From: Diplonema japonicum
Lineage: Eukaryota > Protista > Euglenozoa: Diplonemea
Length of the DNA: 64,000 nucleotides
Assembly (NCBI GenBank): GCA_964019335.1
Contig: OZ025649.1
Span: 496,001 to 560,000, forward strand
Direction of reading: 5' to 3'
In this document: positions 1 to 4,749 of the stretch, piece after piece
Layout of the letters: each line of letters starts with the position of its first letter
Numbering within the stretch: the first letter of the stretch is position 1
Made by a program: the position numbers and the translations under genes
The notes under the pieces: generated by a model
Seen by the model: only the letters and a program-made list of their open reading frames with translations
Told to the model about the DNA's origin: nothing
Database searches by the model: none

Positions 1-38
1 TCCGTCCGACATTATTCGTTTTACAGTATATAAATAAA

Positions 39-3000
39 ATGAGCCTCAATACAACAGCAACCATCGATATAGAAGGCTTCGAAGGTGTGATGATGCTTCT
101 AGGCTTTTTAACATCGGAGGGGCTCGTCCTTGGCGAGATGCTACTCGGTATGAGTGCTGCATCGGAACCCGTTAGCGTACTGTACAGAGCAATAGGAGTA
201 TATGGAGTTTGTGGGTTAGGATGGCTGTCGCTAGGGTATGGCATTGCAAGAGGGCATAATGGGGAAGTGATGGGGGTTAGTGAGGTGTTTTTGTCATCTA
301 ATGGGCCTCCTGCCGCAGCGGAGTATTTAAGTTTTCTTGTTTCGTTCTCAGCAGTTTCATATTCCGCTGCCATCTTGAGCAGTGCTTGCGTCGATCGCAC
401 AAGTATCGCCTCCCTCTTCCCATCCGTCTTCTTTTACTCCATATTCGTTTTTCCTACACTGCTTCTGTGGACCTCAGGCCCCAACGGTTGGCTCAAAAAC
501 ATATTTGATACCTCCTTCCTCGATTATAGCCACGCAGCAGTCATTCATATTGCGAGTGGGATGTGTTGTTTGATTATTTCTTGGCTCTCTGGTCCTCGAA
601 TCCTCCCCGGCACTATTGATATCTTCTCCGAGCAAGGGCAGCAGATCTCCCACTCTCTCTCAAGCTGCTACTACAGCTCCTTCGCCAATTTATTTATATG
701 GAGCAGCTGGCCCACTTGGGGCCTTTCGAACAACCCCGAAACCTCTTTCCTCAACTTTTTCATCAGCACTTCTCTCTCCTGTTCTTCATCAGTCTGCTGT
801 TGCTGCATCTTGTCCTTCGTGGACGCCGGTAACTACAACCTGTACCGTTTACAGCGGTCTGTGGTTTCGGGCCTTGTCGCAATACAATCCTCTAGTGCGT
901 TTATCCCTTTTGAGTTCTCGCCTGTGGTGGGTGCCCTGAGCTGCCTCGTTTTCCACGTGCTGTCTGCAGTTTTCAAGAAATGGCGTTTTGATGACGTTCT
1001 TGATGTAGTTGCCGTGCACGGTGGCTGTGGGGTGCTGGGCGTTGTGTGTGCAGGGCTGTTTGCTGATGGGCAGCTTGTTGAAAAGACGCTTGGCAAACCT
1101 TCTGACGGAGGGCTTACGAGTGGGAACCCTGTGCAGCTGGGGGTACAATTGTTGGGTCTATGCGTCCTAGTGGCGTGGGTGGGGGTCAGCTTCGGTGTTT
1201 TCGCAAAGCTGCTTGACAAGGTAGTCCCTTTCAAGCAGAGCGACCTGGTTCTCCGCAGGGGCGTTGACATCGACAACCATCACACAAGTGGCTACGCTGC
1301 CATGGTGAAGGCGGAGCGGGAGTTCCACGACGGCTTGAGCATCATAGGGAAGATGGAAAACTTCCTCGACGCTCTCATCGATTTCAACACAGACTCGGCC
1401 CAAGAACTCCTCACGTCCTGCAACACCAGTGGCCTTCAAGAGCTGCTGAACACAACGAAATACTACACGAACTACGTCCCACAACATTTGTTGAACAACA
1501 CACGTACGTGTCACCTGGTAGAGCCGCCTAAAGGGATGGGATGCATTGTGCAAACCGACATCCAATCATCCACATTGCTGTGGAGCTTCACAACTGAAAT
1601 GGCACAAGCGCTGCGGAAGCACAACAAGGTAATGCGCAGCGTAATCCAAGAATTCGAGGGGTACGAGGTGAAGACCATCGGGGACAGCTTCATCATTTGC
1701 TTCAGCACGGCATCCCAGGCGGTCAGGTTTTGCCTGAAAGCGCAAATGAGACTCCTCGAAACACGATGGCCACCGCTTGTCATGCAACACGAGGAGTGCA
1801 CAGCTGTGTTTTCTCCGGATGGGAAATTGGTTTCCGGCGGGCTTGGTGTACGCATGGGTGTTCACAAGGGCGAGGTGACACCAGAGTGCGATGCATTCTC
1901 AAACAGAGCCGAGTATTTCGGTGTAGTACCCAGAACCGCATCTGAAATGGAGCATCTCAGCACCGGAGGATTCATAATCATCACGGAAGACGTGTACGAT
2001 GAGGTAAAGGGCTTACGTGAAGTCACAGATGCCAACTGCAGAATTCTAAACTCAGTTGATAAGCGGTACTCAAAGAACATATTCGGCCTTATGCCCCTCG
2101 AGCTTGCCAGCAACTTCAAGGGCATGCTAGAACGGTTAAGCGTACGGTGGAAATCTGCACAGAAAGTGATGACCACCGACAAGCTGTCACATAAAGCGAC
2201 CATCGTAGCCATAAGGTCTAGGAACATGGAACTCTGCAGTTTGGGCTTTCTCGCCAACTTGGAGAACATAGTCAGCATACACGATGGTGTTGTCAATCAG
2301 GTGTTCGGGTCCACTCTGATGCTGTCGTACAATACTATGAAGCCGAACGGAAACCATCTTGAGAGTGCTTTCAGGTATGTTGTGTGCCCGACACCTGACC
2401 GAAAATAAATAGATCTCTTGGGAATATTTCGTTGGATCTTACCACAGAAGGTACCAATGCGGGGGTCTCGGTAGGCCCAGTCAGCTCTCGTATGACTCAT
2501 TTTCTTTCAGACTCCCGACAGTGCGCCATAAGGGGAAGTTTTCCACGCTCTTTGGCGATGCGTATGAGATGGCGTGGGCCCTTGCAGGTTACGCGCAGAA
2601 CGTCGAAGCGTACGCATTGTATTGCGACTTCGGCAGCGAGATGCGATTGCTGAAAGGACACGAGTTCTTGCTCAGCCTACTCGTTCACGTTGATACTTGG
2701 GACTTCCTGAACATAGGCACAGTGCCCATCTACCTAGCGGAAGCGACGAGCTTGCAATTCTATTATGACACCGGAAGAGCCGTTCTGTATTCTGACAAAA
2801 AAGATGCGGCACCATATAGTGAATTTCTCGAAACCGGGAACCGGTGCGATCTCCCAAGGTATGTGTGTTGTACCGCATCCCATAAACGCGCAGAGCTGAC
2901 AAAGGGGAAACCACTTTGTGCAATGTAATGACCTCTGTTTCAAGCCTGCATAGAGAACAAAGCTACCGCCCCTTCACGAAGAGAGCATTCTGTTCAAGCC

Positions 3001-3071
3001 CTGGAAGCCCAATGCCGCTTACCTTAGATGCAAGCTTAGATGCAAGCTCGTCTTTCCAGGCGTACTATTAG
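39..3071 (+). CDS. Ammonium transporter (Amt/Mep) domain fused to a class III adenylyl/guanylyl cyclase domain and a second degenerate cyclase domain; join(39..2374,2413..2489,2522..2858,2894..3071)
   Basis: Amt motifs DYSHAAVIHIASG, LSGPR and DDVLDVVAVHGGCGVLG lie in a multi-TM region. Cyclase motifs are IVQTDIQSST, GYEVKTIGDSF and VRMGVHKG. Three GT-AG introns (38, 32, 35 nt) join ORFs 39, 2432 and 2521 in frame through to TAG at 3069-3071. Confidence 0.85.
3023..3046 (+). repeat. 12-bp tandem duplication (CTTAGATGCAAG x2) in the last exon, encoding LDAS-LDAS
   Basis: Read directly from the sequence. Confidence 0.8.
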
Positions 3072-3131
3072 TTAGGTATCCTAATATGTTTTTTCCTTCT
3101 TGTTCTATTCATTATCTACGTTCATTGCAAC

Positions 3132-4749
3132 ATGATAACATTAACAGGAAAGATGGACGACGCACGGGCTGCTGCCATTTTGCAGCGGGCGTGGAAATGT
3201 TCTATGGCGCGTGAGGTGTATTACGACAAGCGAGAGGCCAGAGCAGAGTGTGTACTTGCGGAAATGGAGCATTCTGAAAAGGAAGAACTAGAAGAAGGGG
3301 TCCGCAGGATCAGCGAATGGTGGGTGGCTGTGGTGCGCAACAAACGAGCAGAGCGCGAGCAGGGTCAAGAGAACGTATCCAGCGTGCAAGGAACCACGGT
3401 CACACCGAGTATACAGGCAAGCTCAGGGACTAAGACAAAACGTCTGGATTCACCAAGAACTCACCAACGGCATTTAAAAGAGCAACAAGAGGCAGAAGGA
3501 GAACGGAGAAAAGAAGAAAAGCGGAAGGAACGCATTGCTGCGCGAAGACTTCGAGAGCTGCAGGTTAAGAGGCGAGAGGAAAGACAGCACGAAGAGAAGC
3601 AGCAAGACCCCAAAACAGAACAAGAAAAAGATGAAGCGGCGGAAAAACTGATGCGGCAGCTTATCGAGCAGAAGATGCTTGAAGAGGAGAGATACCGACT
3701 GCGCAAGGAAGACGAGAAAAGAAGGAAAAAGAAAAAGAAACTGCTGGAGGAGAAAAAAAAACAGGAATACCTCGATCTGGAGAACCTGCTGGTGAAAGAA
3801 AGGGTACAAATGGAGCAGAACCAAGAACAGAAAAAACACGATGCAAGGGTAAGACGGTTGGAAGCAATGCAAGAAAGGCAAAGGGAGAAGGAGCTTGCAG
3901 AAGTGAGGCGCAATCAGGAGCTTCATAAGGTGATGAAGAACAAACCACTCCACATCTTGATGGAAGAAAGAGCAGCGCAAGCAAGAGCGGAAGAGGAAGA
4001 AAGCAGAATCAACAGGTTGAAGGAAGTGAGACAAGCTATAAAGAACGGCGACTCGCAAAGCACAGGCAGCAGCGAGAAAAGATATTTTGTCGGAAAGACC
4101 CACGCGGCGGTTACCGGTGAGATCAAAGAGCTTAGGAACGCAAGGAAGACGAAGCTGGAAGAAATCGACTTAAGGAGGCGGAAAATGCATAATTTTTCCG
4201 AACTTGTGAAAGTGATGTACCAGCCAAAACAAGCTTCCCCAGTTCGGCCAGTCACAGAGACCGGTTTCAACAAATCTCCTCTCCCACCGCTTGTCCCCCG
4301 TGCTGGATCTGCGGAGCCACCAGGGCCTGACAGGCGTGCTATTGGGAACAACTACATGAAAGCGGCGAATGAGAAGGCACTGAAGCACCCGAAGGCGGAT
4401 GCTCCTCCTCAAGAAGCAGCTACCCCCTTAAAGCCTGTGAAGTTGGAGAGGGACAAGATCGGCGACAAGTACCTTCAAGACGCCAAGAGGTACACTAAGC
4501 CGCTGTCCCAGTGCAACAAGGCCATCGATGATGTAGAGCGTGCTAGACAGCTGAAGGAACTCCGGAAGAAGGCAAACAAACTGTCGGCCCACCTTGCAGT
4601 TTCTCCCATGAAAGGGAAAGGGATGGAGGTGTGAGGGGGGAAATCTATTTATTTTACAAAATTTTCAACAGGAAGAACAAGTCGTTAACCAGCAGTACTT
4701 CGAAGCTGTTGCTGCGAAGATGGATCTTCTGCTTGCATTGGGAAATTGA
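3132..4749 (+). CDS. Charged coiled-coil protein with an N-terminal IQ-like motif; join(3132..4628,4672..4749); start could be 3153
   Basis: AAAILQRAWK motif and long E/K/R-rich helices. A 43-nt intron (GTGTGA..CAACAG) gives the C-terminus EEQVVNQQYFEAVAAKMDLLLALGN*. Confidence 0.75.

Follow-up and report, generated by a model that had tools for sequence, protein, structure and literature searches.

A diverged ammonium transporter-cyclase fusion of Diplonema japonicum, probably a half-site or pseudo-enzyme member of a euglenozoan family

Ks-Amt5 and Sd-Amt1 are bacterial ammonium transporters (Amt) for which a receptor function has been proven (PMC5764959, PMC11152129). In both Ks-Amt5 (an Amt-histidine kinase protein, structure 6EU6) and Sd-Amt1 (Amt-HAMP-GGDEF, structures 8QJ3/8QJ4) an N-terminal Amt domain is helically joined to a cytosolic signalling enzyme. 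Here we describe a gene of the same design at positions 39-3071 (+ strand) of the window, by which we mean the whole stretch of 64,000 nt that was analysed from contig OZ025649.1 of Diplonema japonicum (assembly GCA_964019335.1, positions 496,001 to 560,000 of the forward strand). An initial annotation, made from the letters of the window, had compared the gene with bacterial sensor Amts, and the analogy with Ks-Amt5 and Sd-Amt1 holds; unlike them, the protein is eukaryotic, has a class III cyclase as its output and lacks both the HAMP domain and the N1/N2 signature published for the two bacterial proteins (PMC11152129).

Among eukaryotes, CYA18 of Chlamydomonas is a single polypeptide in which a polytopic membrane module for transport or sensing precedes a class III cyclase (PMC9561859). 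The K+-channel adenylate cyclase of Paramecium and Plasmodium and the rhodopsin-guanylyl cyclase of Blastocladiella are built likewise; unlike the copy described here, these channel- or transporter-cyclase fusions of protists have another membrane module and a catalytically competent cyclase. As for the kinetoplastid receptor cyclases, they have an extracellular domain, one transmembrane (TM) helix and a complete catalytic set, whereas here an Amt domain with 11 TM helices is present and the substrate Asp, Asn and Arg are replaced. Mep2 of yeast and Candida, an Amt-family protein for which signalling of nitrogen status has been proposed, has no fused enzyme, and its pore residues are the canonical ones. 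To our knowledge, ammonium sensing in eukaryotes is unresolved, and we know of no defined output mechanism for the yeast Mep2 'transceptor'. With an Amt hard-wired to an adenylate cyclase, the coupling of ammonium to a second messenger would become open to direct tests in eukaryotes, as it did in bacteria through Ks-Amt5 and Sd-Amt1.

Judging from its residues, we consider that the D. japonicum protein is probably a half-site or pseudo-enzyme subunit, either non-catalytic or C1-like, and not an autonomous ammonium-to-cyclic AMP (cAMP) transceptor. As a natural 'half-site' variant, this copy could show how pseudo-enzymes and asymmetric cyclase pairs originate.

Domains and altered residues

The protein is divided as follows (CHD, cyclase-homology domain; aa, residues of the spliced product):
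39..1301, + strand: Amt/Mep-fold membrane domain (aa 1-421, 11 predicted TM helices)
1224..1523, + strand: Amt C-terminal region (CTR) and juxtamembrane helices (aa about 396-495), including ..KYYTNYVPQHLL
1524..2156, + strand: CHD1, class III cyclase domain, half-site (aa 496-706)
2181..2790, + strand: CHD2, degenerate cyclase-homology domain (aa about 715-895; introns 1 and 2 lie within it)

Pfam detects Ammonium_transp (PF00909) at aa 19-419 (163.5 bits, E 8.5e-48, cut-off 23.2) and Guanylate_cyc (PF00211) at aa 502-657 (69.7 bits, E 3.1e-19, cut-off 21.9). Both domains lie within the single open reading frame (ORF) 39-2408 (789 aa), hence the fusion junction is intron-free and independent of the splicing model, exactly as the initial annotation had stated. 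The spliced protein (P0050, 975 aa) was modelled by AlphaFold2 with a 53-row family alignment, giving a mean predicted local distance difference test (pLDDT) of 83.9. The model consists of 11 membrane helices followed by juxtamembrane helices (402-485) and by two cyclase-like domains, in agreement with the Amt-linker-cyclase-pseudocyclase order first proposed for this eukaryotic (euglenozoan) gene; the last ~36 residues of the tail (940-975) were modelled with low confidence (pLDDT <50). Structures 6AOA and 5OYH are among the fold matches of the model. Its Amt part matches Af-Amt1 with Z 53.1 and a root mean square deviation of 1.9 over 386 residues, and also Sd-Amt1 (8QJ3, 8QJ4; Z 51) and Ks-Amt5 (6EU6; Z 50), while the best match of the Amt half to a PDB sequence is yeast/Candida Mep2 (E 3e-20).

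The Amt residues were read from an alignment that included 40 family domains and E. coli AmtB. AmtB D160, the twin His H168/H318 and W212 are kept as D162, H170, H327 and W224. On the other side, AmtB F107 corresponds to A105, W148 to S146 (nt 474-476), F215 to W227 (nt 717-719), N216 to G228 and T273 to Q283, with either N or a gap, and no Ser, in place of S219. The NH4+ recruitment site (W148, S219) and the Phe gate (F107 and the essential F215) are thus both lost here, whereas AmtB and the canonical paralogues show W/S/(F or Y)/F at these positions in the same alignment; in Sd-Amt1, too, the Trp and Ser of the vestibule and the Phe gate are present (PMC11152129). Around W148 the family motif H-W-x-W is L-W-T-S in this protein, so a misalignment does not explain the W148 change. 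The alignment also bears out two earlier readings of the raw translation, precisely that the twin His are kept and that the AmtB segment WFGFN is WPTWG. The signature of the high-affinity N1/N2 site (Q-x6-E-x15-N-x2-D-[FT]-x54-60-T-x2-[ST]), by which the bacterial Amt receptors (AmR; Pflüger et al. 2018/2024) are defined, was used as a regular expression and had no match in P0050 or in any other diplonemid family member. In a genome-wide comparison the Amt domain scored 166 bits with Pfam, versus 262-376 bits for the nine best-scoring other Amt domains of the genome (369-376 for the plain Amt genes), and its identity to the Amt domains of the paralogues is 25-31%.

In the Amt C-terminal region the segment RRGVDIDNH keeps the motif G-x-D-x-x-x-H. 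The juxtamembrane stretch that follows shares homology with the region ahead of the catalytic domain in ordinary diplonemid receptor cyclases, which have in common with this protein both the pre-catalytic helices and a trailing domain; cyclases without an Amt domain align from query residue 411 onwards.

GRESAG4.1 and GRESAG4.3 of T. brucei (1FX2/1FX4) are the closest relatives of CHD1 in sequence and structure (E 5e-18, 26% identity), the fold matching GRESAG4.3 (1FX4) with Z 24.6 over 207 residues. The metal Asp pair (D507, nt 1557-1559, and D549) and the substrate Lys (K545) are kept. As regards the remaining three positions, the substrate Asp is E625 (nt 1911-1913), although its Lys companion is present, and neither of the alpha4 residues is retained, the transition-state Asn being R632 (nt 1932-1934) and the Arg E636 (nt 1944-1946). 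In the HMMER alignment to GRESAG4.1/4.3, 'AEYFGVVPRTASEME' stands here against 'YDYYGRTxNMAARTE', and a MAFFT alignment of the family agrees, with D-K-D-E-R-E for this gene versus D-K-D-D-N-R for its canonical relatives. For a census within the genome, we pooled 35 further cyclase loci with the cyclase-bearing loci already fetched, and all the 41 other cyclase domains sampled were D-K-D-D-N-R, D-K-D-E-R-E being found in this gene only.

CHD2 gave no Pfam match even at E 10, either in the full spliced protein or in the exon-3 frame. We considered it a degenerate cyclase-homology domain, as the initial annotation had done, because its profile aligns in register with that of CHD1 (hhalign, E 4.9e-4), because the AlphaFold2 model gives it the strand and helix order of a cyclase, as in CHD1, in blocks with pLDDT about 85, and because of the fold of its counterpart in the paralogue L002. 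The latter, folded alone, had class III cyclases or cyclase-like proteins as all of its top 22 PDB matches (Z 11.5-15.4); the confidence of this model was low (pLDDT 59.7), though the matches to class III cyclases are unambiguous. CHD2 has none of the six catalytic residues, which are here R (first metal Asp), Q (Lys), S (second metal Asp), T (substrate Asp), E (Asn) and A (Arg), and it is a dead cyclase-homology domain.

In a class III active site, one domain gives the two Asp and the partner domain gives Lys, Asp, Asn and Arg. Since partner-domain residues are missing from both CHD1 and CHD2, neither a CHD1:CHD1 nor a CHD1:CHD2 pair is complete. CHD1 is a half-site with a C1-like pattern (metal Asp present, Asn and Arg absent), and the earlier assumption that this first cyclase domain is functional finds no support.

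Relatives in the genome and beyond

Within an uncharacterised family of euglenozoan Amt-cyclase proteins, found in diplonemids and euglenids and also in Mesostigma, this gene is the one that has diverged furthest. An exhaustive phmmer search of 1.84 billion representatives returned many proteins with one alignment spanning both Amt and cyclase, in which domain mapping distinguished the architectures Amt-cyclase, Amt-Amt-cyclase and Amt-Amt-other. The named sources were Artemidia motanka, Diplonema papillatum, Euglena gracilis (several transcripts), Eutreptiella gymnastica (a UniRef entry) and Mesostigma viride, and further members came from MMETSP and from marine metagenomes. No description of an Amt-class III cyclase fusion, and no published characterisation of the architecture, turned up in the searchable literature, and the initial annotation had likewise known of no characterisation in eukaryotes; the architecture is nevertheless not unique, given the unremarked entries in D. 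papillatum, Artemidia, Euglena, Eutreptiella and Mesostigma.

Public databases call the members of the family plain "ammonium transporter" (KAJ9448406.1 of D. papillatum, for instance, is a 'putative ammonium transporter 1 member 5'), and this annotation hides the cyclase half. In print, the Euglena member EG_1810 is mentioned only as 'an ammonium transporter' (PMC6776534), and the Euglena genome paper lists cyclase subfamilies without it (PMC6366073).

The canonical euglenozoan fusions (KAJ9448406.1, the Artemidia motanka protein, L002, EG_transcript_1810 with its relatives, and the Eutreptiella UniRef entry) have the same domain order as the protein described here and, in diplonemids, also a CHD2-like tail, but they keep F/Y107, W148, F215, S219, the twin His and D-K-D-D-N-R, and this copy does not. 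L002, on contig C7, is a canonical Amt-Amt-cyclase paralogue of D. japonicum itself. All the listed Amt residues are kept by the single-Amt relatives P0093 (D. papillatum), P0070 (Artemidia) and P0137 (Euglena); in the tandem proteins the second Amt domains keep the canonical residues and the first are mostly degenerate. In the euglenid/algal group the Amt is bacterial-like and a CHD2 was not detected; this group may derive from a separate fusion event, but the trees are poorly resolved.

Trees of the cyclase and of the Amt domains did not resolve the branching place of this gene. Both of its domains are on long branches, and its pairing with P0073, which joins two long branches, is unsafe. 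A search of 5.8 billion proteins brought up no close orthologue.

Other architectures were observed beside these. Loci L004, L005, L006 and L008 of the same genome (contigs C90, C37 and C85) are Amt genes with a long extension at the C-terminus; the only profile this extension matches is the dead CHD2-like one, and a catalytic CHD1 was not detected. Two such genes lie ~8.6 kb apart on C90, one of them with tandem Amt domains. P0173, an Amt-cyclase from a marine metagenome (Tara transcript), is the only relative found with the AmR N1/N2 signature, and its cyclase residues are non-canonical (D-M-D-T-N-Q). The genome also holds dozens of receptor-type adenylate cyclase genes, many of them grouped in tandem on contigs C28 and C103; every one of the catalytic domains of this type that were sampled, at least 41, has an intact hexad.

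Possible roles of the protein

The Amt fold with its 11 TM helices places the C-terminus in the cytosol, and the Amt C-terminal region leads directly into the juxtamembrane helices, the catalytic domain and the dead domain of a euglenozoan receptor-type adenylate cyclase; in effect, the Amt has taken the place of the extracellular domain and single TM helix that are usual in receptor cyclases. In the half-site or pseudo-enzyme reading, CHD1, with two Asp and the Lys, would still be able to bind metal and nucleotide, without the transition-state Asn and Arg, and CHD2 contributes no active-site residue. Because CHD1 is incomplete and CHD2 is empty, there would be no complete active site in the protein alone or as a homo-oligomer. 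In the Amt vestibule, the aromatic and Ser residues of the NH4+ site being gone, the ligand site would be altered. Such a subunit would either modulate or pair with the canonical cyclase domains of the paralogues or act as a pseudo-enzyme. The data show the gene model, the transcript, the folds, the states of the residues and the distribution of the family directly; from them we infer loss of autonomous catalysis, an altered ligand site and dependence on a partner.

Several points weigh against this. Calls of inactivity from residues can fail: R632 lies on the same helix as the canonical Arg position, one turn before it, and might partly substitute for the Arg, and Glu in place of the substrate Asp is a conservative change. 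A complementary 'C2-like' domain was not found among the 41 paralogue domains sampled. Amt proteins are trimers and cyclases are dimers, and this poses a stoichiometry puzzle for any pairing, the same that Ks-Amt5 and Sd-Amt1 pose. Finally, the nearest relative, P0073, has lost the Asn and Arg to other residues and has also lost the twin His, so that a conserved function shared by the two is not demonstrated.

A more specific version of the half-site reading puts the protein in mixed Amt trimers or cyclase dimers with canonical paralogues. In this case D507/D549 and the K-D-N-R of the partner would form one active site, leaving one regulatory pseudo-site, as in mammalian C1/C2. The residue pattern of CHD1 is exactly the C1-like one, the genome has at least one canonical Amt-Amt-cyclase paralogue (L002), and Amt paralogues of plants and fungi are known to form hetero-trimers. 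On the other hand, no complementary degenerate partner is among the 41 sampled domains, and identity between its Amt domain and those of the paralogues reaches only 25-31%; we regard this version as unlikely. Still less can be staked on its widest form, in which the protein, as the C1-like partner of the canonical paralogues, would belong to a heteromeric adenylate cyclase that is gated by ammonium, is built on an Amt scaffold and arose independently in diplonemids, and the family would be the first eukaryotic receptor class to turn extracellular ammonium directly into cAMP.

In the initial annotation the protein is a candidate ammonium-sensing cAMP transceptor. On such a reading, external NH4+ that binds in the Amt pore or passes through it would shift the conformation of the C-terminal region and linker and switch on cAMP synthesis by the fused cyclase. 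The architecture and the transcript are as this proposal had them. The architecture parallels the proven bacterial Amt receptors (Z about 50-51 to 6EU6 and 8QJ3), D162, the twin His and the G-x-D-x-x-x-H of the CTR are kept, as are the metal Asp pair and the ATP-selecting Lys, and a helical linker is present. Autonomous signalling by this copy is nevertheless improbable: the transition-state Asn and Arg of the CHD1 half-site are both replaced and CHD2 is unable to supply either, W148, F107, F215 and S219 are all changed in the NH4+ site and gate, N1/N2 is absent, and the canonical paralogues of the same genome are far better candidates. A direct sensor from nitrogen status to cAMP is an idea much better suited to the canonical paralogues and orthologues of the family than to this copy. 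The canonical Amt-cyclase and Amt-Amt-cyclase members are credible candidates for ammonium-regulated adenylate cyclases, because they retain all the transport residues and the full D-K-D-D-N-R set, and they would be the best experimental targets (e.g. KAJ9448406.1 of D. papillatum, a species amenable to genetic manipulation).

Drift of a recently redundant paralogue towards loss, under relaxed constraint and with no specific function left, would account for the long branches in both domain trees, an Amt Pfam score among the lowest of the full-length Amt domains in the genome, the change of several normally invariant residues, the frame-breaking, intron-retaining isoforms and the want of a close orthologue, but such simple decay is very unlikely because the 778-codon first exon is uninterrupted, the frame is correct over three spliced introns, the mRNA is processed, and D162, H170, H327, the CTR motif and D507/K545/D549 are selectively retained, all three domains being also confidently modelled.

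Gene model, transcript and surroundings

The gene model was fixed by a tblastn search of P0050 on the window and by testing the joined exons for equality with the protein. It consists of four exons and three GT-AG micro-introns (38, 32 and 35 nt) that share the 5' end GTATG:
6..26, + strand: trans-splice acceptor for the spliced leader (SL), at the end of a dispersed repeat (polypyrimidine tract and AG at 25-26)
39..2374, + strand: exon 1, with start codon, Amt domain, linker, CHD1 and first CHD2 strands (aa 1-778 plus 2 nt)
2375..2412, + strand: intron 1 (38 nt, GTATGT...AG), skipped in the RNA contig
2413..2489, + strand: exon 2
2490..2521, + strand: intron 2 (32 nt, GTATGA...AG), skipped in the RNA contig
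2522..2858, + strand: exon 3
2859..2893, + strand: intron 3 (35 nt, GTATGT...AG), absent from P0050 and retained in the X7 RNA contig
2894..3071, + strand: exon 4, C-terminal tail, with stop codon TAG at 3069-3071

A search of 5.8 billion proteins gave a 100%-identical match, P0001 (858 aa), with P0050 as its cluster mate. Both are from the EukProt set EP01064 of D. japonicum (Euglenozoa, Diplonemea), as the Trinity isoforms i2 (P0001) and i1 (P0050), and the spliced translation is identical to P0050, which is EukProt P027328. The three-intron splicing model of the initial annotation was therefore exact, its translation being P0050 itself, and two of its introns, of 38 and 32 nt, are those skipped in the X7 contig. 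P0001 retains intron 2, goes out of frame and stops at 2651-2653; thus two transcript isoforms each retain one micro-intron, with a frame shift.

Logan contigs from four runs were compared with window 1-3300. No run is on record as RNA, and the RNA nature of run X7 is taken from its SL tail and removed introns; the remaining runs show the gene unspliced, as in the genome, and may represent the source DNA. The X7 contig (record 28; 2,822 nt) spans window 26-2900 with introns 1 and 2 removed exactly. At its start are 17 non-genomic letters, AGTTTCTGTACTTTATT, which we take to be the 3' end of the euglenozoan spliced leader; their junction with the genomic sequence is at window 26, behind the AG at 25-26. 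The ATG at 39 is the first of the mRNA, and the 5' untranslated region is 27-38. The Amt domain, the linker and both cyclase-like domains thus lie on a single, unbroken processed transcript and are not divided between transcripts, as had been anticipated. The gene is genuine, expressed, nuclear and SL-trans-spliced.

Two other origins were considered and rejected. A bacterial or contaminant origin is contradicted by the trans-spliced SL, by introns of the GT-AG type and by a translation identical to a D. japonicum transcriptome protein. We judged a pseudogene unlikely, the 975-codon frame being intact over four exons and the mRNA spliced and SL-capped; the mean pLDDT of 83.9 and the retention of D162, the twin His and the CTR motif also speak against it.

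The gene starts 3-10 nt past the end of a high-copy dispersed repeat (window 1-36, and L001:1-1498 upstream of the window), whose terminal TTTTACAG provides the SL acceptor of this mRNA. It extends over at least 1.5 kb; of its terminal 21-mer the genome has 121 copies, versus 0 for the control, and identity among the scored full-length matches, at least 40 for each half, is 88-97%. Its last 1.5 kb contain no ORF of at least 120 aa, and the repeat has an inverted stretch inside it. It also accounts for the spike in read depth at the first bin of the read table.

The downstream gene (window 3132-4634) begins about 75 nt beyond the stop codon of the Amt-cyclase gene. Its true start is the ATG at 3152 and not that at 3132, since the same SL tail is joined at 3147. 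The product is Lys/Glu-rich and probably coiled-coil, has an IQ-like motif at the N-terminus and matches no Pfam family, and the tight spacing of the two genes fits a polycistronic, kinetoplastid-like gene organisation.

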